Positions 33,407 through 59,438 of a stretch of 64,000 nucleotides of DNA are shown here, piece by piece; the stretch's first letter is position 1, and each line of letters begins with the position of its first letter. Both the position numbers and the translations under genes were made by a program. The notes under the pieces are model-generated. The model made no database searches. It worked only from the letters and a program-made list of their open reading frames with translations, and was not told where the DNA came from. Source of the DNA: Andalucia godoyi And28 (Eukaryota > Protista > Jakobida); the NCBI GenBank assembly GCA_009859145.1, contig VRVR01000047.1, positions 128,934 to 192,933 of the forward strand. The letters are read 5' to 3'.

Positions 33407-33570
33407 TTTGGGGCGAGCACCAACTCTGCATCAAAGGGGTCATCGCTTCTTCCTGCTCTCCGCCTCCGACGAGAGGGAATCAGGGGTTTCTTGGTTCTCG
33501 GTATCTTCGGGCATGGCCGGTTTGAGTTTGTTTGGAAGATCCCTCTTTGAAGCCTTGCGATGCTTTGTCT
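33407..33570. repeat. Dispersed repeat, copy 1 (pairs with 42108-42255)
   Basis: The core 33486-33570 aligns with 42172-42255 with 8 differences in 85 nt by manual alignment, in the same orientation. Confidence 0.9.
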
Positions 33571-34436: not shown

Positions 34437-35984
34437 ATGGATCCTGCATGTCTGCATCGTGTTGTTGAAGAAGACCGGAAGTTTCCTGTTCCGTCCGTGG
34501 CGCTGTCGTACGGCACTGCAGGGTTCCGGACTCAAGCGACTCATCTTTCTCGTGCGCTGTTTCGGATTGCGATTGTGGCGTGTCTACGGTCGATTTCGGT
34601 GCACGGACGGCCTGTGGGTGTGATGATCACGGCGTCGCACAACCCCGTTGAGGACAACGGAGTCAAGATCATTGATGCAAGTGGCGAGATGCTGGAATCT
34701 TCTTTTGAGCCGTACGCGACTCGTCTTGTGAACGTCGCCAACGAGAGTCTCGAAACCGAGATCAAGGCCATCTGGGGTGCAATCCAAGTTCCGGGAAGTC
34801 CAGACACGAAGCCCACGGTTACGTCGGGGTACGATACGCGGCCGTCCTCTCTGGACCTCGTGAAGGCGCTTGATGCCGGAGTCCGTGCATTTGGTGGGAC
34901 GCATCGGTGCCACGGGCTCGTCACAACACCTGTCTTGCATTACTGTGTGATGAAGAGCTGCATCCCCGAGGTTTTTTATTCGGACACACAGGCCGCATAC
35001 CGCGATCTGTGCGCACTTGCAAACATCAAAGAAAACGTCGACCATGTGGTGTTGGACGCTGCGAACGGCGTGGGGGCTCTGGCGGTTCGGCAGATTGCGC
35101 CGTGGCTGCAAATCGTGCACGACGGATCCCTCGTGGGAACAGTAGCTACGGAGCAGCTGAACCACTTGTGTGGCTCCGAGCATGTGCAAAAAGAAAAGGA
35201 GTGTCCTGTGGAGCATCCAGCGGTCGGCACGGTGTACGCCTCGTTTGACGGAGATGCAGACCGCTTGGTGTTCTCGTATGTCGCGGAAAAGAACGAAAAA
35301 AATGGAGAGCGTGTGTTCCGGCTCATCGATGGCGACAAGATTGCGACGCTGTTTGCAATGTTTTTGAGACGGTTTGACCCGAATGTGCAGGTCACTGTCG
35401 TGCAGACTGCATATGCCAACGGATCGTCCACCTCGTTTCTGAAGAGCTTGGGCGTGAACATCAAGATGGCCAAGACAGGGGTGAAGTACCTGCATCACGA
35501 AGCAGCCCATGCCGATGTTGGCATCTACTTTGAAGCAAACGGGCACGGAACCGTCTTGTTTTCTCCAAAGGTAGTCTTCTCGCTTTCCAAGGAGTCACAG
35601 GCGCTGCACAGACTTCTGCACCCCACCGTCGGGTGTGCAATCCGCGATATGCTAGCTGTTCTCTGTGCGCTTCCCATGGTCGACCTCACATTTGAAAAAC
35701 TTGCAGATCTGTACTCGGATATGCCGTCGAAAATGACCAAGATCATTGTCAAGAACCGAAATGTGTTTGTTCCCAACAGCGACGAAACACGCCTCGTGGA
35801 ACCAGCGCCTGTGCAGGCGGAGATCGACCGTATCTGTGCGCTGTACGCCTCCAAGAGTGCACGCAGCTTCGTCAGACCCTCGGGGACCGAGGATTGTGTC
35901 AGGTTGTACGCAGAGGCTGCAGATGCCGAAACCGTCAGCACCGTCATCCAACTCGTCACACTGGCCTTGGCCAGCTACTGCTAA
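34437..35984 (+). CDS. PGM3: Phosphoacetylglucosamine mutase
   Basis: LSYGTAGFR, catalytic GVMITASHNPVEDNGVK, metal loop FDGDADR, YFEANGHGT, FVRPSGTED. Confidence 0.97.
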   Translation: MDPACLHRVVEEDRKFPVPSVALSYGTAGFRTQATHLSRALFRIAIVACLRSISVHGRPVGVMITASHNPVEDNGVKIIDASGEMLESSFEPYATRLVNVANESLETEIKAIWGAIQVPGSPDTKPTVTSGYDTRPSSLDLVKALDAGVRAFGGTHRCHGLVTTPVLHYCVMKSCIPEVFYSDTQAAYRDLCALANIKENVDHVVLDAANGVGALAVRQIAPWLQIVHDGSLVGTVATEQLNHLCGSEHVQKEKECPVEHPAVGTVYASFDGDADRLVFSYVAEKNEKNGERVFRLIDGDKIATLFAMFLRRFDPNVQVTVVQTAYANGSSTSFLKSLGVNIKMAKTGVKYLHHEAAHADVGIYFEANGHGTVLFSPKVVFSLSKESQALHRLLHPTVGCAIRDMLAVLCALPMVDLTFEKLADLYSDMPSKMTKIIVKNRNVFVPNSDETRLVEPAPVQAEIDRICALYASKSARSFVRPSGTEDCVRLYAEAADAETVSTVIQLVTLALASYC

Positions 35985-36165
35985 GTGCGAACACGCGAAC
36001 ACGCGAACACCACAGCCCCAACCACCAAAAAAAAGGCCCTTCCTCTCTTCTGGCACTATACCCCGAGAAAGTACTGTAAACAAGAAACCCATGGTTCTAC
36101 CATGTCGGGTTCTTCCCATCCTTTCTCCTTGGCTGCTGCACACATACCAGGTTGTCTTTTTACTG

Positions 36166-36320
36166 ACGCCTACGGTACATTATACACTGAACATGCATAT
36201 CTACGAATAGACATGCATATTCAATCTTGCATCCTGTTACCGGGAAGGGGATAGGCCCCAACACGCCTCACGGCGCTCTTCAGATAGATGTTCCGCGCTC
36301 CGTTCCCAATCTCGATCAAT
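36166..36320 (-). ncRNA. Candidate omegaRNA scaffold of copy A
   Basis: Lies at the ORF 3' end and right end, as TnpB/Fanzor omegaRNAs do; hairpin ATATGCATGTCTA-TTCG-TAGATATGCATGT (36220-36191) and a GUAA-capped stem. Boundaries are inferred. Confidence 0.55.
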
Positions 36321-36748
36321 CTGTGAGCCACTTTCTCAGCGTGACACGTTGTTCCTGAGAACGGTGCATTTTGATTCTGACGGCCCTAGCAGCAGGCGTA
36401 GTGACACGTGGTCTCTTAGGAGGTTGCGGGACGTAGGAGGCCCTGTATCGGGCGGCGTAGGCGTAGGCGTAGGCGAATGCGTCGTCCCAGCGCACTTACG
36501 CCCACATTTGAATAAAAACGTGAAACCAAAAAACCAAACCAACGAATGATAGAATGATAGATGGCTATGGATGCTGCGTTAAAGAGTGTCGAAAATGCAG
36601 AGCCTGTGTCACCGGCTGAATTTTGGCCGAGCGTGCGTAAGCACGGATTCCCCTGTGAAACAAACGTGCTAGTGTCGGCAAGTATCGACCGCCTCTGTTT
36701 ATGGATACTTCCTTCCGTATGCATGACAATGACCTGTTATTATTCATC
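36166..36748 (-). mobile_element. Non-autonomous, internally deleted TnpB/Fanzor2-type element (copy A)
   Basis: The minus strand encodes PPKRPRVTTPAARAVRIKMHRSQEQRVTLRKWL (36387-36325 for the RAV...WL part; IS605-OrfB HTH/wedge-type motif). It abuts IDRDW[+1 nt]NGARNIYLK (36320-36278; RuvC-III), then VGAYPLPGNRMQD-stop. Inverted homologue of 50471-50853, with 12 differences over about 226 nt of core. Confidence 0.8.
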
Positions 36749-36876
36749 CGTGTATGTTGCACACGCATGAGCAAGAGGGCCGATCGTGCAAGAGAAGGCG
36801 TTCTTTCCTGGTTCATTCGAAAAATTCCAGGACCCGAAAACAAGGTGACGGCGACAGCGACCAAGAAGACGAAGGG

Positions 36877-38592
36877 ATGGGTGAGTGGCGTGACGTGTCG
36901 TTTTGGGTTCCTTTAAGTAGCCTTTTTCTAGTTGCTGCGACGCTTCTGTGCAGTCCGATGGCCTTCTCAACGGATCTTGATGTCCATTTGAATTGGTTGT
37001 CGATCACAAACAAACTTGATATTTGCAAATGGTATCATGAAGAGCGCTTTTCGCAGTGGACTCTGGACTATCCGCCGTTTTTCGCGCATTTTGAATATGC
37101 ATTGTCCCTGATTGCGGATCTCAGCGACCCTTCGATGCTCTCGCTTGTGCCTCCGTCGACTCCCTCAAAGTCTGCAGTGCTGTTTCATCGGTTGTCGTCT
37201 GCGGCGGGATTTGCTGTGTATCTTTTGGCCTTGGTGAAGCTCTTGCAAGCGTCGTACGAGTTTATCCAACGAAGATTTGGTGGGTCTGCCGTCCAGCCAT
37301 CCGATTATCGAAAATGGCTGCTGTTTGTCGCATTGTTCAACGTGTTCCATCCAGTCCTGATTATGGTGGATCTCGTCCATTTTCAGTACAATGCATGGCT
37401 AATGACACTGTTTCTTGCGGCACTGATATCCACCTTCAAGTCGCTCTCTGAAGCATCCACTGCGAGCGACTCTGCGGCACCGTCCGTGATTATGGGTGCT
37501 GTCTTGTTTTCCATTCTTGTCTTGTCCAAACACATTTTCTTATACTGTGCACCTGCATTCGGAGTAGCAGTGCTGCTTTCCTGCATGCACCGTGAGGGCA
37601 CTAGCACCGGCCATGGTGTCGTTTTCAACTCGAAGAGGCTGGTGCTCACAGCAGCAGTGTGCCTTGCCGTGGTCGTTGGGGCGATTCTGCCGTTTGGTTT
37701 CTGCGGAAGTGGGGGCGGCGTACTGGATTTTGCAGCATCGCTGCATTCAGAGATCCGCCAAATACTCAGTCGGCTCTTTCCATTTGGCAGAGGTCTTTCG
37801 CATGCCTACTGGGCGCCCAATGCATGGTCATTTTACAACTTTGCAGAGATTGCGCTTCGTTTTGTTTCCGGAAGTGATGCTCCCTCCTTGACGCGAGGTC
37901 TTGTCGGAGAATCCACTCCGTTTGTTATATTGCCGAACATTACTCCTGGATTCACAGCACTGGTCTCTCTGTGCTTCATGCTCCCATCCGTGTGCGCCTT
38001 GATCCGAGCGCATTTCGCAACTTCCAAACGCGTGGACTCGGGTATCGCCTTCTTGCACTCCGTGTACTATTGCTTCCTTACGAGCTTCATGTGGGGGTGG
38101 CACGTTCACGAGAAGGCCATCGTCTACACAATCCTTCCGCTGTCCATTCTGTTCTTCTGCGAACAGTGCATGGCGGAGTACGTGGTGGACTCGGCGCAGA
38201 CCTCCGTCGAGTACTTTCAAAACCGTGCAGACTCGACATTCTGGTCTCTTTCTATCCTCTCCCTCATGGGGTCTCTGTCTATCTTTCCACTGCTGTGGTG
38301 GGCCGGGGCAATCCCATTCCGATCGATTCTACTGATTGTGTTTTCGTTAATGTTTAATATTTATGCTCCTCAGAACCGGGCCAAGTCGTGGCTTTCCAAA
38401 CTGGTCTCGTACTACGCGCTAGCATGGCCTGCATTTGAACTTGTTTCAGTCGTACTCCCTTTCTCTGCGGCTGGCCAGCGGTTCCCCTTTGCGTCCAAAA
38501 TGCTCTACTCTATATACTGTGCAGTTCCAATTGCCGTTCTCTGGGCTCAAGCTCTCGGACGCGAGTATGCAACCGCCCGAAACCGAATATGA
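36877..38592 (+). CDS. ALG8: Dolichyl-P-Glc:Glc1Man9GlcNAc2-PP-Dol alpha-1,3-glucosyltransferase
   Basis: STDLDVHLNWLSIT, QWTLDYPPFFAHFEYALS, DLVHFQYN, RLFPFGRGLSHAYWAPNAW, GWHVHEKAI; ATG at 36877. Confidence 0.93.
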   Translation: MGEWRDVSFWVPLSSLFLVAATLLCSPMAFSTDLDVHLNWLSITNKLDICKWYHEERFSQWTLDYPPFFAHFEYALSLIADLSDPSMLSLVPPSTPSKSAVLFHRLSSAAGFAVYLLALVKLLQASYEFIQRRFGGSAVQPSDYRKWLLFVALFNVFHPVLIMVDLVHFQYNAWLMTLFLAALISTFKSLSEASTASDSAAPSVIMGAVLFSILVLSKHIFLYCAPAFGVAVLLSCMHREGTSTGHGVVFNSKRLVLTAAVCLAVVVGAILPFGFCGSGGGVLDFAASLHSEIRQILSRLFPFGRGLSHAYWAPNAWSFYNFAEIALRFVSGSDAPSLTRGLVGESTPFVILPNITPGFTALVSLCFMLPSVCALIRAHFATSKRVDSGIAFLHSVYYCFLTSFMWGWHVHEKAIVYTILPLSILFFCEQCMAEYVVDSAQTSVEYFQNRADSTFWSLSILSLMGSLSIFPLLWWAGAIPFRSILLIVFSLMFNIYAPQNRAKSWLSKLVSYYALAWPAFELVSVVLPFSAAGQRFPFASKMLYSIYCAVPIAVLWAQALGREYATARNRI

Positions 38593-38901
38593 AAACATGC
38601 ATCATTAAAATAAATAAATAAATAAATAAATGAATAAATGAAAAAACACTCTCTCCTTTCTTTTTCTTTCTTTCTTCTTTGACTTGTTGTTATGCAGTGC
38701 ACAGAACGTGCCATCTCTGTTCACTTTCAAACTCAACTCCTGAGCAGGAACACACACGCAGCCCAGAGCTGAACAGCGAAGACACGACGTTTCTCTTCCG
38801 TAGTGCACAAAACCCTTTCTCATTCGAATGTCATCCCTGTGCCTTTTTGACACTTTTAATTAGTATTTTGACTTCTTTTGCTTCACGCATTTACGTTTCA
38901 G

Positions 38902-38903
<2 letters not shown>

Positions 38904-38970
<67 letters not shown>

Positions 38971-38971
38971 G

Positions 38972-39015
<44 letters not shown>
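38904..39015 (+). repeat. Compound microsatellite (ATT)n(GTT)n
   Basis: Directly visible; switches from ATT to GTT at 38971. Confidence 0.97.
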
Positions 39016-39016
<1 letters not shown>

Positions 39017-39070
39017 TTCTTCTTATTCTTCTTCTTTCCCGTGCTTTGTAACTGGAGGTAGTTTGAGAAG

Positions 39071-42022
39071 ATGCTGCTGCTGGAGTCAAGTGATCATCGC
39101 GAATTTCCAGAGCCAAGCAGAACAATTCTATTGACGAAGCATGCTCCAGCAACGACAGTTACGGATGCCGTCCCAATCATTCGATCGTCAAACACGTTGT
39201 TTGGCGTTTCGTCACATCACACGCTCGACGTGTTCTTCACGACTGGGTCATCGGGACACATGCAGTCGTCGATGCGGATTGTCTTTCCGTCGATTCTGGT
39301 GGACTACACTATTTCTGGAGACGAATTCCCGCTCAGAGTGACTGCTGTGACATCTTCTGATGACACCACGCACACAATCTCAGCATCGGTATCATCGCTG
39401 TCGGTATCGGCGTCGCTATTGTCACCGGCGTTGGCCTCTTCTTGCAATTCTTCGCTGGTTGGAATATCGGCTCCATTGGGTTCGACGAACAACGTTCTGC
39501 ACGTTCTGACTATTATGGAAGACGACTACAAACACGAGAGCAGAGGCATCAGGATTTCTGGTGCGTCATCGCACGCCTCTGTCCTTGCGACTGCGAGCTT
39601 TTCGGCATGCATCGTGTCTTCTCCGCTGATGTTGTGTACGCTGAGGGACGACACTTACAATGTTGCCCCTGAAATGACGAAACGGCTGTTTGGGCTTCTT
39701 GGCTCCTCTACCAAGACAGTGCCCACGCGGATTGAGCAGATTGTTGCGGTATTTGATACGTCCATTCCGCTGCCCGACGACATGCAGGATCAAACAGACA
39801 GGGACAGTTTCAGGGCATGTGCGGTGTTTTTGGAGCGAGGGAGCTTGAAGAAATGGCATGTAGCATCGAACCAGCTGACGAACGCTACGGACTTAATCGA
39901 TTTGCCGGTTGCCGTTGATCCTTTTGCGTCGACCGTTACTCTGGGGTATGTCGGACCGCAATCGCGTGACGAATCTGGAGTTCTTGTTTTATGCTGGGAA
40001 AAAGGAATTTGGACGTTTACCATCGGTTCTCTTGCCCCTGTCAAATTCATTGCTCACCATTCCGCACATACCCTCATTCCCTTTCCATCCTTCTTGCTCG
40101 ACTCCACTACTGGGGATGGGATTTCCGTTGCGCATCCTGGAATGCCCAGCGACGCGAAAGGTACACTTGTCCGAGGATCGCAGTTGGCTGTTTTGTTTTC
40201 TTCAAACCTTGTAGACGGAAGTGCTCAGGTCGTGGGAGCTGTGAAGCTGGAGGACAGCGCAATCTTGTTACGAGACAACAATACCTACGCGGTCCTCCTT
40301 TCGTCGCCGTGGCTTGATTCGGTATTTCTTGAATTTCGCCGATGCGAACAGGATCCCATGCAGAGTGGTCCCTCAAAGAAACTTGCCGAGTTGCTTTGTG
40401 AAGCTCCGTCTGGTTCGTTCGAGACTGGGCTATCCACTCGCGATTTGATCTCTGTTTGCAGGCACTTTTTGTCCAAGTTCTCCAAGAACTCGGATGCAGC
40501 GGTGCCCCACTACGGCGATGCTCTCGTCAGATATCAGATGGATCGTGTGCGAAGGCAAGTCGAGTATCTTGAGGATCTCGGAACGATGTGTCCATCCTTG
40601 GTAGATGGTGCAATTGACGGTGTTACCTGCGGAGTGTTACTGTCAGAGGAAGCTTTCTCGATACTGGAGACTCTTGGGTTGTATGATTCCCTTTATGCTC
40701 TTTCCCGGTTGTTGAATTCGCCATTTTGGCAAGGAGTGTACTTCCTGTCGTTGCTTCGTCTTCATGATGCGATGTCCATTTTTGATTCGCTTGATCTTAT
40801 TACGTACTACTTCGTCATCATGGATCGTCTGCGTCGCTGCGGCTACACTGACATTGCATTGCAATTGGCGACCCGTGCCCGTCTGGAATGCGATCCCTCT
40901 TTTTTAGCCAGTGTCGGGGAAGGTGATCGCGAGCAAGCATTGAAGATCAGAAAAGATGCTGACGAGTATTTGTATTGGATTGCGCTCAAGTCCAAAGATG
41001 CGCTCAGGCTTCATTCATTTATACTGGAGTTTTCGCGAACGACTGACACACCGGAAAAGACGAGAGATCGGCTAGTGGCGGCGGTTTCCCATCTTGCGCA
41101 CTCTCCGTCCATGACGACGTTTTTGCATCTTGTTTGGTCCCATTTAGATTCTGCGCTGTGCAGCGTCCTCATTTCGCAGAACGAGTTCTTGCCACTGGCC
41201 TACTCATACGGAATTTTGCACAATGACTTTCATCTGGCATCCTTTGCTACCGTCAAGGCCGCTTTTACGACTCCTATCGAGCAAGCGTCTCAGAGGTTGC
41301 TTTTCCTACGGCTTGCGTTGTCGGCTCTCCAGGTTTGCGAAGCCGAGTCTCGTGTGACTCTCGATAATCCAGTTGTGTTTTATGCCGAAGGAGAGTCCCT
41401 CGGGCGGGTAGTCACTTCGAAGCGTGTGGAGAACGAGATTAAGTTCACCGAAGCTGTGGAATTTCTAGTTGCAAACAATGCGCTTCCCAGACCTTCGGCG
41501 GTGGCTGCATCGCCATCGGCTCGGAGCACCGGCGAGGATGCTGAGATGAGAGAAGCGTCAGGTCCAGACTTGTCATTCAGAATTGGTGATATTTGCAAGA
41601 CTCTTGCGAGTTTCGGAGCGTTTGAGCTTGCACTGTCCATCAGCGCGGACTCGGATGCATCGTGGAGGATGCTGGCAGAGTGGTTTGTGGAGACCCCTTT
41701 GGAGCAGAGTCTGCAGGAAGTCGTTCGACTCATCAAGTCGTTTGACAAGTCCAATTCTCATGTCGGTTTGCTTACCGTCGCAGAAGCCATTCTTTCCAGC
41801 GACCAGAACGCCTTGATTCCGGAACCTCTCCTGGACATGTTTGAATCTGCAAATCTCGTGGAAGATCTCGTCCGACTCTACTTGTCCTACGGTCTTGTAG
41901 CAGACGCTAAACGAGTCTCCGAAGAACAAACGAAGATTGATAAGCGCGACAATCGCACTGGTGTGGACTCTTGGACCTCACGTGCACGATCTGTACTTCA
42001 TCTCGTCAATGCCTCCTCCTAA
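39071..42022 (+). CDS. Nup160-like nucleoporin (beta-propeller plus alpha-solenoid)
   Basis: N-terminal half is beta-strand-rich and C-terminal half is helical; the terminal LTVAEAILSSDQNALIPEPLLDMF...EDLVRLYLSYGLVADA resembles the Nup160 C-terminus (LP.WL...LLRLYL.Y..LEEA). Confidence 0.55.
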   Translation: MLLLESSDHREFPEPSRTILLTKHAPATTVTDAVPIIRSSNTLFGVSSHHTLDVFFTTGSSGHMQSSMRIVFPSILVDYTISGDEFPLRVTAVTSSDDTTHTISASVSSLSVSASLLSPALASSCNSSLVGISAPLGSTNNVLHVLTIMEDDYKHESRGIRISGASSHASVLATASFSACIVSSPLMLCTLRDDTYNVAPEMTKRLFGLLGSSTKTVPTRIEQIVAVFDTSIPLPDDMQDQTDRDSFRACAVFLERGSLKKWHVASNQLTNATDLIDLPVAVDPFASTVTLGYVGPQSRDESGVLVLCWEKGIWTFTIGSLAPVKFIAHHSAHTLIPFPSFLLDSTTGDGISVAHPGMPSDAKGTLVRGSQLAVLFSSNLVDGSAQVVGAVKLEDSAILLRDNNTYAVLLSSPWLDSVFLEFRRCEQDPMQSGPSKKLAELLCEAPSGSFETGLSTRDLISVCRHFLSKFSKNSDAAVPHYGDALVRYQMDRVRRQVEYLEDLGTMCPSLVDGAIDGVTCGVLLSEEAFSILETLGLYDSLYALSRLLNSPFWQGVYFLSLLRLHDAMSIFDSLDLITYYFVIMDRLRRCGYTDIALQLATRARLECDPSFLASVGEGDREQALKIRKDADEYLYWIALKSKDALRLHSFILEFSRTTDTPEKTRDRLVAAVSHLAHSPSMTTFLHLVWSHLDSALCSVLISQNEFLPLAYSYGILHNDFHLASFATVKAAFTTPIEQASQRLLFLRLALSALQVCEAESRVTLDNPVVFYAEGESLGRVVTSKRVENEIKFTEAVEFLVANNALPRPSAVAASPSARSTGEDAEMREASGPDLSFRIGDICKTLASFGAFELALSISADSDASWRMLAEWFVETPLEQSLQEVVRLIKSFDKSNSHVGLLTVAEAILSSDQNALIPEPLLDMFESANLVEDLVRLYLSYGLVADAKRVSEEQTKIDKRDNRTGVDSWTSRARSVLHLVNASS

Positions 42023-42107
42023 GTGCCCTAACTAGTAAAGCAAATAAATGAGCTCCACTCGGAACTCTGCTGTCACTGAAGACAGATCCAAAGCCACGTG
42101 TTTTTTA

Positions 42108-42255
42108 TTTGGGACGAGCGCAAACTCTGTAATGCAGATTGCTCTGCATCAAAGGGTCGTCGCAACCACGAGTTTCTTGGTTCTCGGTATCTTCGAGCAT
42201 GGCCGGTGTGAGTTTGTCGGGGAGATCCTCTTTGAAGCCATGCGATGTTTTGTCT
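42108..42255. repeat. Dispersed repeat, copy 2 (pairs with 33407-33570)
   Basis: See copy 1; on the minus strand it begins ATG GCT TCA AAG AGG (MASKR). Confidence 0.9.
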
Positions 42256-42400
42256 GTTGGAGAGTTCGTTGATTATTATAAAATAACCAAAAGTAAATAG
42301 AAAGAAAGTGTAAAAGGAAATTCTTAGACTTGACTACGGTAAGAAAATCGCGCCTCAATATGGTTAGATATACGGACATCCGATGTGCAACCGTTCCAAT

Positions 42401-42471
<71 letters not shown>

Positions 42472-42680
42472 ATAAGTGACAACGGACAGAATTCCAGGTA
42501 GTAGGTAGCCGCGTAACCTGCAGTCGTGCCACAAGGACTAGAACAACAGCAACGACTGGAGCCACAGTTGCTATTCGATTTGGAGGAGGATTTGAACACG
42601 ACGTTGCTGCCGGCAGTGAGCAAGTAAGCCAGTAAGAGAGTTTATAAGAGAGTACATCCGAGAGAGAGAGAGAGAGAGAG

Positions 42681-43451
42681 ATGATACACGATACGTTTCG
42701 AGAGTCGATCCACTCGTCGGATGTGCCTATGCCGACGAGCTCGGTGCCTTCGCGGTCGAGCTGGGACGTCCCGCACTGGCGGCCCGTAGTTGCAGAGTTT
42801 CTGGGTACTTCGTTTTTTGTGTTTGGCGCAGTGACGTCGAGTGAGTTCAATCACAAGGACGAGCTCTCAGCGAATGCGCTTGCGACGGCGCTGTCGCTGA
42901 TGACTGCGATTGCGGTCACGGGGCCGATTTCGGGGGCGCATCTGAATCCGGCGGTGTCGTTTGCGGCGGTTCTGTGCAGAAGACTAGACCTTGCATCGTG
43001 TCTAGCGTTCGTGATTGCGCAGCTTGCGGGGGGCATATGCGGGACTGCACTGTGCAGATCGATGGTGTGGCACAACACGGGGACGCTGGCTGCGGTCGAG
43101 ATGGCTGCGGGAACAACTGGTGCACAGGCGTTTGTATGCGAAATGATACTAACAATCGTGCTGGTGATCGTGTGCTTGTCTGTGGCAGTCGATCCGGTGG
43201 GAGAGGAATCGCCGCTGGCTCCAGTGCTCGTCGGGATGACCGTGGCTGCCGATATCTTGGTTGGAGGGTGGATTTCGGGGGCATGCATGAACCCGGCAAG
43301 AGCATTCGGGCCGGCTGTTGTCGCCGATATATGGACTTCCGATCTCTGGGTGTACTTTACGGCACCCTTTGTGGGGGCGATCATCGCCGTCCTGCTCTGG
43401 AAGGTCGTCATGAAGCCACGAAGGTCCACGACCACCTTGTTTATCCGATGA
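42681..43451 (+). CDS. Aquaporin (MIP family)
   Basis: VVAEFLGTSFFVF, ISGAHLNPAVS and ISGACMNPARAFGPAV (two NPA boxes), WVYFTAPFVGA. Confidence 0.97.
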   Translation: MIHDTFRESIHSSDVPMPTSSVPSRSSWDVPHWRPVVAEFLGTSFFVFGAVTSSEFNHKDELSANALATALSLMTAIAVTGPISGAHLNPAVSFAAVLCRRLDLASCLAFVIAQLAGGICGTALCRSMVWHNTGTLAAVEMAAGTTGAQAFVCEMILTIVLVIVCLSVAVDPVGEESPLAPVLVGMTVAADILVGGWISGACMNPARAFGPAVVADIWTSDLWVYFTAPFVGAIIAVLLWKVVMKPRRSTTTLFIR

Positions 43452-43749
43452 GCGGTATTGCATGCTTGGTGCTCGATCAGGACTTGCCTTGACAGGAATG
43501 ACAATGGCTTGGACTGAATGAATGAATGAATGAACGACTGACTGAATGAATGAATGAATGAATGAACGACTGACTGACTGAATGAATGAATGAATGAATG
43601 AACGTAAAAACAAAATCAACATTGAGCGAACAGAACGGTAGCAAAAAAGACGGGGGGGGGGGGGACTCAGAGTTTATATTGTCTTGTGTACATGTTGGAG
43701 GAGAGGTTGTTGCTGTTTTGCGGCCGGGGAATCGCCCCTCGTTGCCCGG

Positions 43750-44199
43750 CTAGGCCCACATGCTGTCAAACGAGACTGCGGATTTGGACGAATCGCCGGT
43801 GCCCGATAAGAGATCTTCGAGATTTTGTCCGGTGTTCTGGCCCGAGGCGCTGTCCTGCTCGGGATCGATCGTGACTCGGATGCGGATACCATCAAACTCC
43901 AAAACATCGCTCACGGCTCGCGACATCCCAGCATACTGCATGATCGAGGCAGCGGATGCAATGACATTGCGAAGCTCATCTTGCTTCGAAGACGTCCGCT
44001 CCAGCAGTTCGCGAGCCTCGGGCTTCGTCAGTTCCCGCTCAACTGCCTTTGAAATGAATATCACATCCTGCGGTCTTTGAAAATGCAAGTCGTACTCCGG
44101 GGCACCAGTCTCCTCTCCAGATCCTACACCCGCTGCTGCTGCTCCTGACACCGCCAACGACGACGACGACGACGTCGACAATTTGGATGCTTCGGACAT
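43750..44199 (-). CDS. Hypothetical 149-aa protein
   Basis: ATG-started ORF filling the space between AT-rich spacers; globular-looking core YDLHFQRPQDVIFISKAVERE...LEFDGIRIRVTID. Confidence 0.55.
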   Translation of the reverse strand: MSEASKLSTSSSSSLAVSGAAAAGVGSGEETGAPEYDLHFQRPQDVIFISKAVERELTKPEARELLERTSSKQDELRNVIASAASIMQYAGMSRAVSDVLEFDGIRIRVTIDPEQDSASGQNTGQNLEDLLSGTGDSSKSAVSFDSMWA

Positions 44200-44801
44200 G
44201 TGTTTTGTCTTTTTGTTTTAGTTTTGTTGACGCACCAATAGCTTGAATAGTTGCGCTGCGATCAGAGTTTTCGAATAAGCAGTGCTTTTCTTTACTGAGA
44301 AAATAAAACAAACGAACAATGCTATAACGATTCGATGATTTCTTCTTCTTCAAAAACTCATTAGCAAACATCGCTTTCGGATGGCTTTTGGCAACGGCAG
44401 CCTTGGTGAGGAACGCGGCGGTATATACTACATTGGTTCTTCCACATTCGATCTCCTGGAACTAGCAGATTCTACTCGACTGTGCCACTGCTGCTTACGT
44501 GCAGCTCATTCTCTTTTTCGACACCTCTTTTCGAAAGAGAAAGTTCGAGTTTCGAGCGGGCTTCCGCTGCAATGTCTCTGTTTCCACCATCGTTACTGGC
44601 GTTCTGGTGCCCGCAGCCCGAGCTCCCACGTCGCTGCAGAGGGGGTAAAAAAGACAAGTGTGCAACACACGGTATACATTAAATATTTTAGATAATAATA
44701 ATAATAATAATAAAATGAAATGAGCCGATACTTTACAAGCCAACGTGGTGGCGGTGATGCAGAAGCAATCGCAATACATTACAAAAACCAGGTCCATTTC
44801 G

Positions 44802-47309
44802 TCACGTAGGAGTCTCGGGAGTTGCCGGCCGGCTTCCATCGGATGTTACGGAAGCAGTGTCGATTTGCAACGGAGGACGACCGTCAGAGTCCTCCCCGAC
44901 CAGCTTCAGGTATGCGCTGACCCGGGCTTCGACCAGTTCCGCATGTGAACCAGCTCCGGCAACCTTGCCGCACTCTAGAACATATACATAATCGCAGACC
45001 GTACGGACCTGTTCCATTTCGTGCGTTACCAAAATGAGAGCGATTCTGCGCTGGCGAACCCATTCTACAAGCCTCGGTACAATGACTGCTCTCTTTTTCC
45101 AGGCATCCATGGCGGACATGCTCTCGTCTAGAATAATAACCTTGGCGTCGAACCGGACGAACACACGGGCAAGTGCAACAGACTGTGCAAATCCACCAGA
45201 CAAGTTGGATCCACGAGGCTGCACGACGGAGGCCAGCAGTTTCAGCTTTTCCAAGCGAGAAAGCGATGCTTCCTGAAGCAGTGGTTCCTGGTCAAGCACC
45301 GGGGGGTTCGGTGCACCGACGCCAGGCCTCGCTGAGTTCTCTGCATATGCAAAGATACCCGCTCGTTCTGCCGCATCCAGCAGCTCGTCCTCCGTTGCAT
45401 GCTCATTTCCCATCCGAATGTTATCTGCGATGGTTCCTTGAAACAAAAACGGACGCTGAGGAACATATGCAATCATCGACCGTATCGCAATTCTTGAAAC
45501 CTGGTCATACGGGATGTTGTTGATCAACAGACTTCCCACTTGGCACGTTGTGATTTTGGTCAGCAGATGCATCAGAGTGGATTTTCCAGAACGGTTCTGC
45601 CCAATCACGCCATAGCAGATTCCCGGAGCGAAGACAATATCTGGCGAATCCTCCAAATCCAATGCCCATGTCATTGAGCACGACGCATCTGCCGCCGACG
45701 AGTCGCGAGGTCCATCGGTTCGTTCATGCTCCTGCTGATCTGGATGCAGCTCCGATACATGATGACTCCGATGGTCCTGCACGGCAGCAGAGGACGATGC
45801 AGCAGCATCAGCAGCAGCCGCGGTCGACGCAGGAACCGGAGCGTTCATCGAGACACTAGGTTTTGAAGCGACCATGGATGGATTTGGGTTGGGATAATGG
45901 AATCGAACTCCAGAAACACGAAGTTCCGTAAAGTCGGTGAGCAAGTGAACCATTCCAGGAACGAGCCTTTCTGCTTCCCAGAACGACGGCATCGACAGCA
46001 CAGCGGCCACCCGGCCTCCGTTCCCGACAGTATCCTGCTGCTTCAGAACCTGGTAAATCGTCTGTCCATTTCTCCAAGTCCTCTTGAAGAGCGACAGCAA
46101 ATGGTCAATATCAATCTGCACTCTGCGATACTGTTCATGGGAAATGCTTCTCTTTTTCATGACGTGAGCAACCATTGCAGTTTCCGACAAGAAATCTAGA
46201 ACCGATCTCGACGCGTACGTTGACCACACGCGCTCGACGAGCACAATGGGGGACTCTGATCTGGCCAGATCAGCCTCGACACATTCATCAAACCTGTCCA
46301 GCTGCGAAAACTGCAAATTATGAAGCTGGAGGTCGACAAGGGCGTCCATCAAGGAGCTCCAGAGCGGAGGAACTCTTCCAAATCCAAGCGAGACAGTGGT
46401 CTCCGCATTCCCAGCATTGGAGACAGGAGGATCTGACTTCGAGACCGCAGTCGCAGCAGGAGGCCGAAATGAATGAAAAGAAGAAGGGGCCATTCGCCTT
46501 CGTGTAAAGTCTCCCAGAGCGTTCAGAATCTGAACCACAGAGGGTCTGACAATCGCCAGCACATCAACATGGTCTCTGCGTTTCCACAAGTCCACGGACT
46601 CGCGGAAGGCAGCATACACTGTAGACAGCGCTGCTGGAATGGTGTAGTGGAACAGATTCAATGCCGACGAAATCTCCCCCTGGATTTTCTGCTCCAACGC
46701 GCCATCGGAAGCGAGCTGCTGGCTAATCAAGCTTCCTTGGGATCCGTCCATGGCGCCCAAGTCGCAAAACAGCAGTTTTTCAAGAACCATTCGGCGGACA
46801 AGCCACTTGTTTGTCGTTGCCACTCGATTTCGCAGCGTTCTGTCCAACGTATCCAGCGCCGCATGCGCCAATGTTGCCAGAGCATACTGCGACGCAACCA
46901 TCCAGTCAATGGATCTCCCCGCAATCATGCCATGATGCAACGAGTTTCTCATTTCTCTTAAATTTTGAGCAAGCTTCCTTCGCGATAAGAACCACGGAAG
47001 CGCTTCAAACACGATCGGCAGCACATAATTCACAAACAGTGTCATGAACAGCTGCGACGGATCGCGATTGTACAAGTATGCATAAAACGAAAATGTCGGA
47101 GAGCACAGCACGCGCTGTCTCAGCGACCTTAGTACCGAAAACAGTCGCGCAGGATGCACAAGTCCAGCTGCATAAGACAAGACCCATGACAATGACAATG
47201 ACAATGACAGTGACGGTGACCGCGCAGCCTTGGCAGTGGTGGCGGACATCGATGACGGCCCAAACCATGATTCCAAAAGCCTGTGAACGAGCTTCGACAG
47301 CGTATTCAT
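44802..47309 (-). CDS. ABC exporter-type half transporter (TMD-NBD) with atypical signature
   Basis: Walker A GQNRSGKST, Q-loop YVPQRPFLF, signature LSGGF, Walker B IILDESMSAMD, H-loop LVTHE; N-terminal hydrophobic segments. Confidence 0.88.
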   Translation of the reverse strand: MNTLSKLVHRLLESWFGPSSMSATTAKAARSPSLSLSLSLSWVLSYAAGLVHPARLFSVLRSLRQRVLCSPTFSFYAYLYNRDPSQLFMTLFVNYVLPIVFEALPWFLSRRKLAQNLREMRNSLHHGMIAGRSIDWMVASQYALATLAHAALDTLDRTLRNRVATTNKWLVRRMVLEKLLFCDLGAMDGSQGSLISQQLASDGALEQKIQGEISSALNLFHYTIPAALSTVYAAFRESVDLWKRRDHVDVLAIVRPSVVQILNALGDFTRRRMAPSSFHSFRPPAATAVSKSDPPVSNAGNAETTVSLGFGRVPPLWSSLMDALVDLQLHNLQFSQLDRFDECVEADLARSESPIVLVERVWSTYASRSVLDFLSETAMVAHVMKKRSISHEQYRRVQIDIDHLLSLFKRTWRNGQTIYQVLKQQDTVGNGGRVAAVLSMPSFWEAERLVPGMVHLLTDFTELRVSGVRFHYPNPNPSMVASKPSVSMNAPVPASTAAAADAAASSSAAVQDHRSHHVSELHPDQQEHERTDGPRDSSAADASCSMTWALDLEDSPDIVFAPGICYGVIGQNRSGKSTLMHLLTKITTCQVGSLLINNIPYDQVSRIAIRSMIAYVPQRPFLFQGTIADNIRMGNEHATEDELLDAAERAGIFAYAENSARPGVGAPNPPVLDQEPLLQEASLSRLEKLKLLASVVQPRGSNLSGGFAQSVALARVFVRFDAKVIILDESMSAMDAWKKRAVIVPRLVEWVRQRRIALILVTHEMEQVRTVCDYVYVLECGKVAGAGSHAELVEARVSAYLKLVGEDSDGRPPLQIDTASVTSDGSRPATPETPT

Positions 47310-47519
47310 ATCATTGTGTGACGACGATTCAGTAACTATCAGCGTGTCAGCGTGTCAGTAAGTACGTAAGTGATGGAGAAACACCAAATAATAATAATAA
47401 TTAAAAATTCAAGAGAATCTTAAACATTAAAGCAAACCTCGATTATCCAAGCGCAGTCGGATCAATTGAGTTGAGTTTACTGGACGTAAACTGGAGAGGC
47501 TGGTTTCTCTGGTTTCTCG

Positions 47520-48260
47520 AGTGTGTGCTTGATTCTTGATACGCTGCTCTTGATGCTGCTTCACGGTTTATTTAGGGGAGGCGTGAAATGTCCGGCAGAA
47601 CCAGACGTTTCAATCGTTCATGAGTGCCTCACGCGAGGACTCCAGCTCGCTTGCACTGGGAATACCGCGTGGATTCCGACACAAGAGCCGCGGTCAGATG
47701 GACAGTTCACTGTGGCGCAGTGTCTTAACGCCCCGGGACACGAAGCGCTCATGAGGCAACACCGGATTCTCGGGCATCCGCATGCGCACCGTCGCCTGCT
47801 GCTTCTTGACACGTCCGCGGAATCGGCGGCTGTTATGTCACCTAAAATAATAAAACCTATCTGATTTATTTTACGAACAAAAGAATAAAAGAAACAAACC
47901 GTCGGTTACACACAAATAGCCAACACACACAAACGGACAAGTCCGTGTCGTTGTCGACATTTTTTATCGACAACACTGCGACAGCTACAACAGAACGAAT
48001 CCTTGAAATCGGGAAAGGACAGGTCATTCTCCAACACAAGGGCGAGGTAGTGGTTCAGCAGGAGTGCGCCGCGCCGCGCCACGTGATGAACGACAAATCG
48101 TCCACCCAACTCAGGAGGGCATCGTGCAGATCGGGATGGCGCAGCCGCTCTCGGAGCGCAGCTTTCACCGCCTACACCATCGGGTTCCGAGAATGTGCAA
48201 GTATGAAACCGACAACGTGTGGCGAAGTGTGAGGAGGATGTGGTGCCAAATAAAAATGGT
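47520..48260 (-). pseudogene. Degraded coding-like segment, possibly a transposon/Fanzor1-like relic
   Basis: The minus strand holds the protein-like stretch VVHHVARRGALLLNHYLALVLENDLSFPDFKDSF (48094-47993), then an AT-rich intron-like spacer ending ttttag, then a GC-rich stop-interrupted segment. No intact ORF. Confidence 0.3.
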
Positions 48261-48674
48261 GAAACATCAAAAATACGAACACAGCAGTGTTTTATTCAAC
48301 ATTTTATTTGACACAACGAAGTCCAAGGTGAAACGGGAGAAAGGGAAAAAGGAAAAAGGGAACGGGTTCAGAAAACAAAATCCAAGGGACGAGAGACAGC
48401 GGATAACAGGCAAAAGGGAAAGGAAACGAGAGAGAAACGGAAAGGGGGAAAAGAAAGACCGGTTTGAGGAATTGCTGGAATTTCTGAATGGAAATTTATG
48501 GAAGCGCCCTTACGGACGAGCGGTGATGCCATCATCATTGCCAACGTCTCTTTCTCTTTCTCTGTCTCTCTGTCTCTCTGTCTGTCTCTCTGTCTGTCTC
48601 TGTCTCTCTGTCTGTCTCTGTCTCTCTGTCTCTTTCTTTCTGTCTCTCTGTGTTTTTGCGCAATCGGGCACGAT

Positions 48675-49817
48675 ATGGAAGAGTGTTCGAGTGCGTATGA
48701 TGCTATTGAGCAGGTGGTTTCGCAGGATCCTGGAAATCGGGGGATTGGACCGCTTGTGCAACGAGGGTCGCTGGCGCGGTGCATAAGCGCTCTGAAACTT
48801 GACAGTAGTGATTCTTCTTCTTTGAATCCGTCGACGGTGACGCATGTGGCGGTCTTGTCGGGGTTTTGCATACCGCCTGCTGAAACTGACGGACCTCCAG
48901 GGGTATTCGCGCTGTGCAGGTCTATTCTCGTGGCGTTTCCAAATGCAATCGCATCGGTGATGTGTGACATCACGACGGTCCAGGTCGTGTACATGGCACT
49001 CTCGCCACTGTTCGAGGACTCGCGATTCGCAAACCGCTTGTACGTTTATGCTTTTCCCACAGACTATTCGCACGCCGAGTTTATGAACTTGGTTGACACC
49101 GTGGAACCTCGAGTGCCGCAGATGCCCGAACACAGTCTCGTGGTGTACCGGAATCGAAGCCCCGAGGACCAGGTTCTGCGCGAGGTGTATGGTGGCGACG
49201 GCGACGAGTCGTGTTTTCAAAAGGTGTTTTTGGCTTCGGTTCCTCACGTGGAGCACTATGCAGGCGAGCCCATGCACAGGTTCTTTGCACGGTCGGTGTC
49301 GCACGCAATCGCTCTGGAGCGGTCGGGGACCTCGGTCTCGAGAGCGAACACCAATTATACCATGAAGGCAAGAGATGTCACAAAGTATCATTCACCCTTG
49401 CAGCTCATCTGGGACTCGGTCTTTGTTCCACACTGCTTCACAATCGGAGTTGGAGACGGCGGAAACGAAATCGGGATGGGGAAGATTGCGGACCTTGTGG
49501 CGCAGCACATTCCGAATGGCGACACGATTGGCTGTGCGTCGTCCTGCTCGGAAATCCTTGTATGTGGGGTCTCGAACTGGGGAGGATGGGCCATAGCTGC
49601 CTGTCTGCTGGGCTCCCAAAGGTTTGAATCGGAATTTCCCTTCTGTGAGAACAACGGCAAGGACGTAGAGGAAAATTGCGTCGATCGCTGCATCCAGGCT
49701 GGTGGCGTGGACGGCGTGCTTCGCGCTGCGGTGTGTTCCGTCGACGGTTTGCCCATCCAGGAACATATTCATGTTCGAAGAGCCATCTTCGATATTCTCG
49801 TGCAGCACAATTTGTGA
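48675..49817 (+). CDS. DUF4392 / D-glutamate cyclase C-terminal-domain-like protein
   Basis: DPGNRGIGPL, LSGFCIPPAETDGPPG, TIGVGDGGNEIGMGKI, GVSNWGGWAIA, GGVDG...SVDGLP; ATG at 48675. Confidence 0.85.
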   Translation: MEECSSAYDAIEQVVSQDPGNRGIGPLVQRGSLARCISALKLDSSDSSSLNPSTVTHVAVLSGFCIPPAETDGPPGVFALCRSILVAFPNAIASVMCDITTVQVVYMALSPLFEDSRFANRLYVYAFPTDYSHAEFMNLVDTVEPRVPQMPEHSLVVYRNRSPEDQVLREVYGGDGDESCFQKVFLASVPHVEHYAGEPMHRFFARSVSHAIALERSGTSVSRANTNYTMKARDVTKYHSPLQLIWDSVFVPHCFTIGVGDGGNEIGMGKIADLVAQHIPNGDTIGCASSCSEILVCGVSNWGGWAIAACLLGSQRFESEFPFCENNGKDVEENCVDRCIQAGGVDGVLRAAVCSVDGLPIQEHIHVRRAIFDILVQHNL

Positions 49818-50096
49818 GAGCGCCGCCTCCTCCCCCCGTCTCCAAAAACGGGATCAGACAAAAATAATGGACTTGCGGAAGTTCTATGGAAGACCGTGAT
49901 TGAACATTTGCGACTTCGAGTTTTTACATCACATGTTTTCATACAGCTCCGTGTCGATAATGCAGCATGTTCACAAAAAAAGAAAAGAAGAGGACCAATG
50001 GGCTCTTTTGTCTGCTTTTTCTTGACGCGTTTTTTTTTTCTTGTTTGCCCCCGCCCACCTTCCTGCTGCTGCAACAATCTGTTATTGTTTGTCGTC

Positions 50097-50423
50097 ATGA
50101 GTTACCCTATTGAAAGAGATGCCGAGCCGCCCTTGGACGAAAATTCTGTCTCGTCTCCAGATGCACAATTCAAGGCAACGTTGCGGCCGAGTCTCCGCCG
50201 CGAGGGTCCCACTGCTCCCAAAATGGGCGAGCATCCGTTCAGTTCCAGCGCTGGAACCGCCATTTGGCCTCCAGACCATGCGCAGTATGCCCCGATGAGC
50301 CGCGAGGTGATGGACGCCGATCGCGAGCGTTTCCATCACGAGCAGCTGCAGACCCGGCATCCGATGTCCAAAGAGTCGCCCGACACTACAAACGTATCCA
50401 ACCCAGACCAATCTTCGCGCTAG
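50097..50423 (+). CDS. Short hypothetical protein (108 aa)
   Basis: ATG-started GC-rich ORF between T-rich spacers; no recognisable motif. Confidence 0.4.
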   Translation: MSYPIERDAEPPLDENSVSSPDAQFKATLRPSLRREGPTAPKMGEHPFSSSAGTAIWPPDHAQYAPMSREVMDADRERFHHEQLQTRHPMSKESPDTTNVSNPDQSSR

Positions 50424-50470
50424 CACATCTTTATTTCTCCTCCATCAACCCTTGCCTTGTCTTGATGACC

Positions 50471-50853
50471 GATGAGTAATAACACGTCATTGTCATGCAT
50501 ACGGGGGAGTATACATAAACAGACACGGTCGATACTTCGCCGACACTAGCACGTTTGTTTCACAGAAATTCGTGATACAGGGCCTCCTAGGTCCCGCAGA
50601 CCTACTAAGAGACCACGTGTCACTACGCCTGCTGCTAGGGCCGTCAGCATCAAAATGCACCCTTCTCAGGAACAACGTGTCACGCTGAGAAAGTGGCTCA
50701 CCGATTGATCGAGATTGGGAACGGAGCGCGGAGCATTTATCTGAAGAGCGCCGTGAGGCATGTTGGGGCCTATCCCCTTCCCGGCAACGGGATGCAAGAC
50801 TGCGTATGCATGTCTATTCGTGGGTGTGCATGTTCAGTGTGTAATGTAGGCGT
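50471..50853 (+). mobile_element. Non-autonomous, internally deleted TnpB/Fanzor2-type element (copy B)
   Basis: Encodes GPPRSRRPTKRPRVTTPAARAVSIKMHPSQEQRVTLRKWL (RAV...WL at 50637-50699), joined to IDRDW[+1 nt]NGARSIYLK (50704-50746) and VGAYPLPGN; inverted homologue of 36166-36748; ends aatgtaggcgt. Confidence 0.8.
50704..50853 (+). ncRNA. Candidate omegaRNA scaffold of copy B
   Basis: TCCCG-GCAA-CGGGA GNRA hairpin (50779-50792) and GTATGCATGTCTA-TTCG-TGGGTGTGCATGT hairpin (50804-50833). Boundaries are inferred. Confidence 0.55.
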
Positions 50854-51036
50854 AAAACCAAGCATCTCCATTGTGCTTTTTTGTTCTTGTAATGTTGCGT
50901 CTGCTGTATCGCAACAGAAAAGAAATTCCCGATTGTCGGGCAATAAAAAACCTCCGATGCGCCAAAAACGATTCACCAAATCTCCGATATCCAAACTCCG
51001 AAGTCGGAAGTTGCCAGCTCGTGCTTCCCCAATGTT

Positions 51037-51106
51037 GAGTTCTGAGTTCTGAGTTCTGAGTTCTGAGTTCTGAGTTCTGAGTTCTGAGTTCTGAGTTCTG
51101 AGTTCT
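51037..51106 (+). repeat. (GAGTTCT)10 heptamer tandem repeat
   Basis: Ten perfect units, directly visible about 110 nt upstream of ATG 51214. Confidence 0.97.
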
Positions 51107-51213
51107 GCAAGACAGAAACGACCGCCGCCGAGAGAGTCCGTGCGTCCACATAAGAGCTTGTACTGTTGTTTTAAGAAGGTTACAGGAACACCTTCCCCCT
51201 TCCGCACCCCGCC

Positions 51214-59180: not shown

Positions 59181-59246
<66 letters not shown>

Positions 59247-59438
59247 CAAAGTGCGAGGGAACGGTTCAGACGACTCGGTTCGGAACGAGAATCGGGACGT
59301 TTCCCGCTCGCTTCCCGACAGCCTTTTGTTTCCTTTAAAAAATAAAGCTGTACGACGGAGGGGCTGCGTACGTGCGGTGCACAGAGGACATCACCGGTTA
59401 CCGTAGGTGTGTCGTGCGGCTGGGATGCCGAGGAATGG

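Follow-up and report, generated by a model that had tools for sequence, protein, structure and literature searches.

The 64,000-nt stretch of DNA analyzed here (the window, with positions counted from its first letter) is nuclear DNA of the jakobid protist Andalucia godoyi (assembly GCA_009859145.1, contig VRVR01000047.1; VRVR00000000 is the accession cited by the A. godoyi nuclear genome paper, PMC7050145), and it contains three internally deleted copies of Fanzor2, a eukaryotic member of the TnpB family. These copies, designated A, B and C, have been stripped of a nuclease open reading frame (ORF) and carry an omegaRNA scaffold with a conserved, strand-specific fold, and A and B were copied as a unit after the deletion had taken place. 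We regard the three copies as probably trans-dependent or decaying 'ghost' elements, rather than as proven working guides. The original prediction, made from the letters of the window, had presented them as non-autonomous Fanzor2 mini-elements lacking the protein core, and this identification is supported by the protein profile and RNA covariance evidence set out below.

The original prediction had described A (36166-36748, minus strand) and B (50471-50853, plus strand) as inverted homologues, and their similarity at these coordinates proves to be far beyond chance. BLASTN aligns a core of 275 nt (A 36449-36176 against B 50574-50848) at 93.5% identity (E 1e-117) and, separately, a left-end segment of about 98 nt (A 36751-36653 against B 50468-50565) at 90% (E 3e-32), and a repeat search of the window returns the inverted arms 36176-36424 and 50600-50848 as 249 ungapped nt with 94% complementarity. 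The 12 differences over about 226 nt reported earlier are of the same order as our recount, but the latter yields 17 substitutions and 2 indels across approximately 278 aligned nt of the core. About 200 nt in copy A, between the left segment and the core (36450-36652), are absent from B, and the homology breaks off sharply at both ends of the two copies, their flanking sequences being unrelated. The interval 24361-24509 had been put forward as a diverged third copy, and it was indeed recovered at full length (E 5.7e-12) by a covariance model containing no Andalucia sequence. The alignment of this copy, C, to A and B is limited to the 3' part, with a BLAST match of only 33 nt (E 1e-6) and the terminal AATGTAGGCGT in common, and BLASTN found no left end for it. 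No further copies were detected in the window by covariance model search, or in the 7.4 kb past its left edge.

The ends of A and B, read from the sequence, show neither terminal inverted repeats nor target-site duplications, and the left end of A does not form a terminal inverted repeat with its right end. BLASTN revealed no similarity between the left ends of the elements and 84 Fanzor2 loci. The left flanks run ..ACCG/ATGAG in B and ..ACGG/ATGAA in A, the slash marking the element boundary; the CCG next to B resembles the target-adjacent motif of NlovFz2, the Fanzor2 of Naegleria lovaniensis (CCG; PMC10432273), a likeness that is suggestive at best. At the opposite boundary, the T at 36166 (copy A) and the T at 50853 (copy B), counted here as part of the element, may already belong to the guide as its first base.

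The protein origin of the elements can be read across frames, and the peptides come out as originally predicted: A and B encode PPKRPRV..RAV(R/S)IKMH(R/P)SQEQRVTLRKWLTD up to a stop codon, then IDRDW, one extra G and NGAR(N/S)IYLK. In copy A the first frame closes with ..PPKRPRVTTPAARAVRIKMHRSQEQRVTLRKWLTD and the stop, directly after which the other frame, with its one extra G, supplies IDRDW-NGARNIYLKSAVRRVGAYPLPGNRMQD and a second stop; the junction and the extra G are identical in copy B. A Fanzor2-clade profile of 524 positions was built from 109 proteins, out of at least 120 relatives retrieved with NlovFz2, and among the matches listed nearly all of these relatives carry Pfam PF12323, PF01385 and/or PF07282. 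When this profile is run against all six frames of the window (2488 fragments), the N-terminal peptide of B comes first (E 3e-4) and that of A second (E 3.7e-3), followed by a fragment with an E-value of 0.42. The matched region, profile positions 122-156 (125-156 in A), is the N-terminal strand of the wedge (WED) domain, or HTH_OrfB_IS605-type motif. Once the one extra G is removed, the other remnant reads IDRDWNGARNIYLK, a RuvC-III motif (DRDxN(G/A)AxNI) that falls on profile positions 493-511 (E 5e-4), and the frameshift-corrected fusion peptides reach E-values of 8.8e-7 (A) and 1.6e-6 (B) through two stretches each, at profile positions 128-156 and 493-510. The wedge and RuvC-III motifs of TnpB/Fanzor2 named in the original prediction are therefore found by a frameshift-aware profile at the correct ends of the protein.

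General databases add little to this assignment. The sole match of the fusion peptide among 24736 Pfam families is the end of PF07282 (TnpB zinc-ribbon/TNB, positions 47-60 of 60, E 0.1), one of the families in which a relationship had been anticipated, and the two raw halves searched separately in Pfam match nothing. A phmmer search of the PDB with the fusion peptide returned only a spurious match to plastin, a word-indexed search of 5.8 billion proteins found none sharing three or more 5-residue words with it, a scan of viral contigs produced no confirmed relative, and a scan of metagenome DNA for GTGTTGGGGCCYAYCCCCTTCCC gave no match.

What separates A and B from an active gene is the absence of about 336 of the 524 profile positions (approximately 157-492), which span the rest of WED, the REC domain, RuvC-I and RuvC-II and the zinc finger. 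Because all of this is missing between the WED strand and the end of RuvC-III, no nuclease can be made from either copy. The combination expected of a working nuclease (the RuvC-I DPG, the RuvC-II glutamate and a CxxC..CxxC zinc finger in one open frame) is absent, the two remnants being in different frames and separated by a stop, and D(R/K)DxN(G/A)(A/S)xN(I/L) appears nowhere in the window in a single continuous frame. The history of copy C seems to reach further back. With respect to A and B it carries 9-nt and 15-nt indels that are in frame and leave the position of the stop unchanged, which points to a divergence from the A/B lineage at a time when the gene was still coding.

The C-terminal tail of the former protein is informative in its own right. 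The Andalucia tail, RRVGAYPLPG, has counterparts in intact Fanzor2 proteins (..GRVGTYPLPSQ in protein P0018 and ..DVGSYPLPGFG in P0091), and a subset of the family (P0015, P0017, P0018, P0055 and P0091, with gene ends in loci L002, L003, L006 and L081) finishes in VG(A/S/T)YPL(P/G). The codons of VGxYPLP, GUUGGGnCCUAYCCCCU, constitute helix H1 of the omegaRNA, and the same RNA motif lies 3' of the stop codon in NlovFz2. The ending VG(A/S/T)YPLP in this subset of Fanzor2 proteins is hence a case of dual coding, since these codons double as helix H1.

As the original prediction had held, the cassette for this RNA has been retained, and the 3' segment of the repeats is homologous in both sequence and structure to the 3' ends of intact Fanzor2 genes. 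The experimentally mapped omegaRNA of NlovFz2 includes GCGTTGGGTCCTTTCCCC and TTGCAAGA and terminates in AAATAAAGGCG, that is, in ..AAAGGCG followed by a 21-nt guide, and the conserved part of NlovFz2 opens with KIRLYPNEQERTTLNQWMG (Saito et al. 2023 supplement, PMC10432273); the protein start KIRLYPNEQERTTLNQWMG and the three RNA motifs all resemble the Andalucia repeats. The repeats and the 3' ends of intact relatives follow a common plan, in which a closing helix H0 (CGCC...GGCG, or CACC...GGUG in L003) is accompanied by H1 (GGGnCCUAYCCC), a short hairpin (H2), the sequence UGCARRA, a long hairpin (H3) and a tail ..UGUAGGCG. When an nhmmer profile is made from seven non-Andalucia Fanzor2 3' regions, one of them the mapped NlovFz2 omegaRNA, its three top matches in the window are A (E 0.0019), B (E 0.045) and C (E 0.24), and the fourth has an E-value of 7.1.

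Covariance models lead to the same place from both directions, with E-values that are rough, having been obtained with a shortened calibration. The first model (R1), made from copies A, B and C only, was used to search 251 kb comprising the 84 Fanzor2 loci, and its best matches, all full-length, lie at the 3' ends of two genes, P0018 (3237-3344 in L003 and L004, the ORF ending at 3284; E 2.4e-7) and P0091 (in L002; E 0.057). With filters off, L006 and L081 come next. The second model (R2), for which only the 3' ends of four intact Fanzor2 genes from outside Andalucia were used, was run on the window with filters off and gives exactly three significant full-length matches. These score 44.8 bits for B (E 7.7e-13), 42.3 bits for C (E 5.7e-12) and 37.0 bits for A (E 3.4e-10); the fourth-ranked match has an E-value of 0.25. 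The intact relative closest to the Andalucia scaffold is the one following P0018 (L003 3237-3344 and L004, from Logan SRR28842991 and SRR30849499; 34.7 bits), and the genes neighboring P0018 in these two loci have no Pfam matches.

The four helices are supported by covariation. In an eight-row, model-guided alignment (A7), which is fitted to the model and so favors pairing, standard pairs occupy 92.3% of the cells as opposed to 73.2% in shuffles, none of 500 shuffles reaching the observed figure; both sides have changed in 21 of the 30 pairs (10.1 expected), and slid controls are 37-48% paired. In each of the three copies, 28-29 of the 30 pairs of the scaffold are retained. The stem of H3 measures 18 bp, has a high share of G-U pairs and is capped by UUCG in A and B and by GCGA in C, with sense-strand energies of -21.8 (A), -12.3 (B) and -17.9 (C) kcal/mol against -12.2, -5.8 and -1.5 kcal/mol on the antisense strand, and z-scores of -8 in A and -1.7 in B. 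This G-U richness and the far better folding of the sense strand point to an RNA, not to a DNA palindrome. H2 is a perfect CCCG-GCAA-CGGG hairpin in copy B and is lengthened in copy C, as read from the sequence, by the 15-nt in-frame insert, and copy A bears a 5-nt insertion (CCGTA) inside the conserved tail. The structure emerged from the comparative, model-guided alignment: a plain MAFFT/RNAalifold alignment of seven sequences recovered seven pairs, the 160-nt 3' region of copy B folded alone is unremarkable (z +0.6), and Rfam at gathering thresholds has no match in the window. Two other kinds of hairpin were considered and rejected. The termini are not the TC..CTRR of a Helitron-type 3' end, and the hairpin is part of the conserved omegaRNA fold; an IS200/605-type DNA hairpin is at odds with a G-U-rich helix that in copy C folds on the sense strand alone, and with a protein clade that is Fanzor2.

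These observations suggest a history for the elements, whose components are listed in Table 1. A single deletion joined the first WED strand, at about the codon for L (..TLRKWL), to the last exon-like piece (IDRD-NGARNI..stop), and the deleted element was later copied at least once by an enzyme, presumably a transposase, supplied in trans. That A and B were copied as a unit after the deletion follows from their having the same junction and frameshift, unrelated flanks and a shared sequence that ends at the right end conserved in the clade. Copy B would afterwards have lost the 5' segment with the start codon, and C would be an older remnant of a diverged subfamily, reduced to its 3' part. A and B have no nuclease ORF, keep both ends and occur more than once in different flanks, in the manner of ghost loci and of the bacterial palindrome-associated transposable elements (PATEs); C keeps the right end only. 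What persists are the element ends and, as the only module still intact, the omegaRNA scaffold. The scaffold coincides in part with the 3' end of the former ORF and reaches as far as the right end (..AAUGUAGGCG). If a sense-strand transcript were bound by a cognate Fanzor2, the approximately 20 nt of flank past GGCG would act as the guide.

Table 1. Position and content of the Andalucia Fanzor2-derived copies and of the genes next to them
Feature	Position	Strand	Remarks
Copy A, entire mini-element, left to right end	36166-36748	-	583 bp; homology to copy B begins and ends here, flanks unrelated
Copy A left-end segment (GATGAATAATAAC...GTTTGTTTCACAG)	36653-36748	-	Against B 50471-50565: 6 substitutions and 3 gap columns
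Copy A-specific 5' segment	36450-36652	-	Candidate start codon 36507-36505 and most of the candidate intron
Copy A N-terminal coding remnant (NLS-like, i.e. nuclear localization signal-like, PPKRPRV and first WED strand, RAVRIKMHRSQEQRVTLRKWL)	36319-36442	-	Stop codon 36318-36316
Copy A C-terminal coding remnant (IDRDW, extra G at 36305, NGARNIYLKSAVRRVGAYPLPGNRMQD, stop)	36221-36320	-	Fanzor2 profile, Pfam PF07282
Copy A omegaRNA scaffold (helices H0-H3, tail ..AAUGUAccguaGGCG)	36167-36281	-	Model R2, nhmmer
Copy A putative guide	36146-36165	-	Flank 3' of right end; by position and analogy with the 21-nt NlovFz2 guide
Copy B, entire mini-element	50471-50853	+	383 bp; without the A-specific 5' segment
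Copy B 8-nt filler AAATTCGT	50566-50573	+	In place of the A-specific 5' segment
Copy B N-terminal coding remnant (..TKRPRVTTPAARAVSIKMHPSQEQRVTLRKWLTD)	50581-50705	+	Stop codon 50706-50708; Fanzor2 profile
Copy B omegaRNA scaffold	50743-50852	+	Model R2, full length
Copy B putative guide	50854-50873	+	By position
Copy C, solo 3' remnant	24361-24509	+	Last ~32 ORF codons (RSIYLENVAHAEGRVGAHPLPNHAMHVVGLQH, stop 24457-24459) and right end
Copy C omegaRNA scaffold	24376-24508	+	Model R2; H2 lengthened by 15-nt insert, H3 loop GCGA
Phosphoacetylglucosamine mutase	34437-35984		Near copy A
ALG6/8 glycosyltransferase ORF	36754-38592		Near copy A, on the strand opposite to copy A
eRF1/Dom34-like protein	22465-24087	-	Near copy C
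DUF72 protein	24721-26088	-	Near copy C

The 5' segment found in copy A alone may preserve the beginning of the former gene. Its ATG is followed by a candidate intron of 57 nt (GTAAGT...ACAG, 36499-36443) that extends 7 nt beyond the A-specific segment into the shared core, and the predicted splice would join ATGTGGGC to GGCCTCC, giving an in-frame M-W-A-A-S-Y-V-P-Q-PPKRPRV. The introns of A. godoyi are GT..AG without exception and range from 55 to 756 bp (PMC7050145), a range that accommodates the candidate. Three segment boundaries within the element end in ..ACAG, similar to a 3' splice site (36653, 36443 and 36321 on the minus strand in A; 50565 and 50580 in B), and they correspond to the ends of the left segment and of the candidate intron and to the deletion junction CTCACAG/ATTGAT. 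The parent gene may thus have had several introns, with the deletions located at introns.

Several points weigh against the view of A, B and C as trans-dependent or decaying Fanzor2 ghosts. Neither the window nor the extra 7.4 kb nor the protein collection yielded an intact or full-length Fanzor2 of A. godoyi, and no Andalucia entry is present among the 120 matches listed in either Fanzor2 search. No transposase was identified either; TnpA was sought only through a general scan of the window ORFs, and none would be expected inside an element of 0.4-0.6 kb. The left-end boundary is defined by A and B alone. The NlovFz2 omegaRNA scores a low 6.3 bits with model R1 when filters are off, albeit at the exact position of the omegaRNA, and to this must be added the rough calibration of both models and the pairing bias of the covariation alignment mentioned above. 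Finally, the A. godoyi assembly omits subtelomeric scaffolds, which consist mainly of transposon and virus-like sequence (PMC7050145). With these reservations, we still consider it reasonably probable that the three copies are relics.

The same origin is compatible with a different present, the one put forward in the original prediction, in which A, B and/or C would be working stand-alone guides for an intact A. godoyi Fanzor2, encoded for instance in the unassembled subtelomeric repeats, that cuts or binds DNA matching their right flanks. We see this as possible, yet on balance unlikely. The near-complete retention of scaffold pairs in each copy speaks for it, as does the nature of the changes between A and B, since 9 of the 10 substitutions in the scaffold are transitions that mostly preserve pairing through G-U, whereas transitions make up 5 of 13 in the other two segments. 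Copy C has been reduced to little more than the scaffold, and even so it scores 42 bits with the foreign model R2; copy A retains a 5' segment that could drive transcription; the scaffolds left out of the assembly are rich in transposons; and there are precedents for guides of this kind in the ghost omegaRNAs that function with SpuFz1 and in PATE omegaRNAs acted on in trans. On the other hand, the partner nuclease has not turned up in any of the three places searched, and A and B differ more in the scaffold (9.1%) than in the dead coding remnant (4.2%). The 5-nt insertion of copy A sits inside an otherwise invariant terminal motif adjoining the guide, the H3 helix of copy B is weakened (see the values above), and the guide sequences of A and B find no second match within the window.

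A broader version of this idea, which strikes us as rather doubtful, is that ORF-less Fanzor2 omegaRNA modules are retained as a heritable collection of dispersed guides for a Fanzor2 nuclease residing in the unassembled subtelomeric repeats, or that the scaffold has been exapted as a nuclease-independent RNA. Were either to hold, copy C, trimmed almost to the scaffold and well folded, would reflect selection on the RNA alone. From active scaffolds one would expect small sense-strand transcripts, roughly 130-150 nt long, whose 5' end is near GAAGAGCGCC and whose 3' end is some 20 nt past GGCG.

The remnants might alternatively have been coopted by the host, serving neighboring genes as promoter, untranslated region or terminator, or acting as a nuclease-independent non-coding RNA, and the setting of copy A lends this notion some appeal. 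On the strand opposite to A, the ALG6/8 glycosyltransferase ORF has its first ATG (36754) 5 nt from the left end of the element; the Pfam match of this ORF begins at residue 64 and its true start may be Met42. Whichever start codon is used, the region upstream of the gene consists of element sequence, because the left end of copy A adjoins the ORF. Intergenic spacers in A. godoyi are also short, 44-691 nt for those gene pairs that the genome paper analyzed (PMC7050145). We nevertheless find cooption by the host improbable, given that A, B and C differ in orientation and position relative to their neighbors and that the features conserved among them are those of a Fanzor2 omegaRNA and not of a common host motif. 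As to chance motifs in an unrelated repeat or small gene, the raw peptides have no significant Pfam or PDB match and the window has none in Rfam, but two independent lines, the protein profile at both ends (E ~1e-6) and the foreign model R2 (E 1e-10 to 1e-12), identify the same family in the same orientation and make such an origin highly implausible.

The genome in which these elements reside is gene-dense and intron-poor, with a size of about 20 Mb (PMC7050145), and the genes flanking the three copies are of an ordinary housekeeping type. Ten of the window's long ORFs coincide exactly with EukProt entries, and one of the ten is placed on contig VRVR01000047.1. Approximately 180 nt 3' of the right end of copy B, at 51036-51107, a perfect tandem array of TGAGTTC (10.3 units) precedes the next gene. 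Other simple repeats occur in the window: an array of TTTTGGC (16.6 units, 96% identity) at 27563-27673, at the 5' end of a long ORF (27508-29151); perfect (ATT)22 and (GTT)15 microsatellites side by side at 38904-39015, directly upstream of the ORF 39071-42022; and a (TC)16(GT)15 tract at 42405-42468 mirrored by (AC)n(AG)n at 59183-59251. An ORF of 3900 codons runs without interruption from 5220 to 16922 (+). A second small non-coding repeat, of about 110 nt and approximately 88-90% identity, is found in two intergenic regions, at 33478-33590 and 42164-42275 (+); it shows weaker similarity upstream, no common ORF in any frame and no Rfam match, and it could be another mini-element or an uncatalogued non-coding RNA.

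The concept of an ORF-less omegaRNA element is not new, since such elements have already been published as SpuFz1 ghost loci and bacterial PATEs. What is new here is the jakobid host lineage, a Fanzor2-type ghost with readable deletion scars, and a helix H1 that is dual-coded as the protein tail VGxYPLP. Fanzor2 was already known within Discoba, in Naegleria (PMC10432273), and a literature search found no paper combining Fanzor with Andalucia or jakobids. Our analysis thus extends the range of Fanzor2 and its omegaRNA to the jakobids, deeply branching eukaryotes whose genome is very compact, and provides a clean example of the decay of an RNA-guided nuclease element, in which the protein core is lost first and the ends and scaffold persist and still get copied. 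The covariance model can be used to count ghost elements across protist genomes; only the discovery of a partner nuclease and of the RNAs would change the current view of Fanzor biology.

The closest known system is Fanzor2 itself, as represented by NlovFz2 and its metagenomic relatives P0018 (L003) and P0091 (L002). Like the Andalucia elements, these proteins begin with a basic, NLS-like stretch followed by (K/R)I(R/K)(L/M)(Y/H)P..EQ..L..W and carry (I/L)DRDxNGARNI at the C-terminus, and their omegaRNA overlaps or follows the end of the ORF with the same succession of GUUGGGnCCUAYCCCC, short hairpin, UGCARRA, long hairpin, a ..GUAGGCG or AAAGGCG tail, and guide. The lack of visible terminal inverted repeats and target-site duplications in A and B agrees with what is reported for NlovFz2 loci (PMC10432273) and for transposons of the IS607 type, which have a serine-recombinase TnpA. 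Unlike these genes, the Andalucia elements have about 64% of the protein deleted, and so no nuclease; their scaffold is nearest to the L003 type and far from that of NlovFz2 (34.7 and 6.3 bits, as given above), and their host is a jakobid, unlike that of NlovFz2. A second parallel is provided by Spizellomyces punctatus, where 134 ORF-less 'ghost' Spu-1 loci stand beside 19 full-length genes (Saito et al. 2023, PMC10432273) and where ghost omegaRNAs, which are active with SpuFz1 in human cells, have been proposed to broaden the guide repertoire (PMC10432273). The Andalucia copies share with these loci the absence of an ORF and the retention of ends and omegaRNA, but the Spu-1 ghosts derive from Fanzor1 and have 30-nt inverted repeats and a conserved interior of about 550 nt, whereas the Andalucia elements belong to Fanzor2 and have no inverted repeats that we could see; in the latter, moreover, readable N- and C-terminal codons reveal the deletion, with three copies visible and no partner gene known. 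Bacterial PATEs often encode omegaRNAs that are acted on in trans and need the TnpB of another element (Meers et al. 2023 preprint, 10.1101/2023.03.14.532601). PATE-like derivatives of IS200/IS605 are likewise minimal, non-autonomous and devoid of a protein gene, but they are prokaryotic, are moved as single-stranded DNA by a Y1 transposase and bear subterminal palindromes. Lastly, miniature inverted-repeat transposable elements and other internal-deletion derivatives of DNA transposons are similar in being short, in having lost the interior of the autonomous element and in being copied in trans; the Andalucia elements depart from them in having neither a terminal inverted repeat nor a target-site duplication, and in a right end that doubles as a structured RNA gene.

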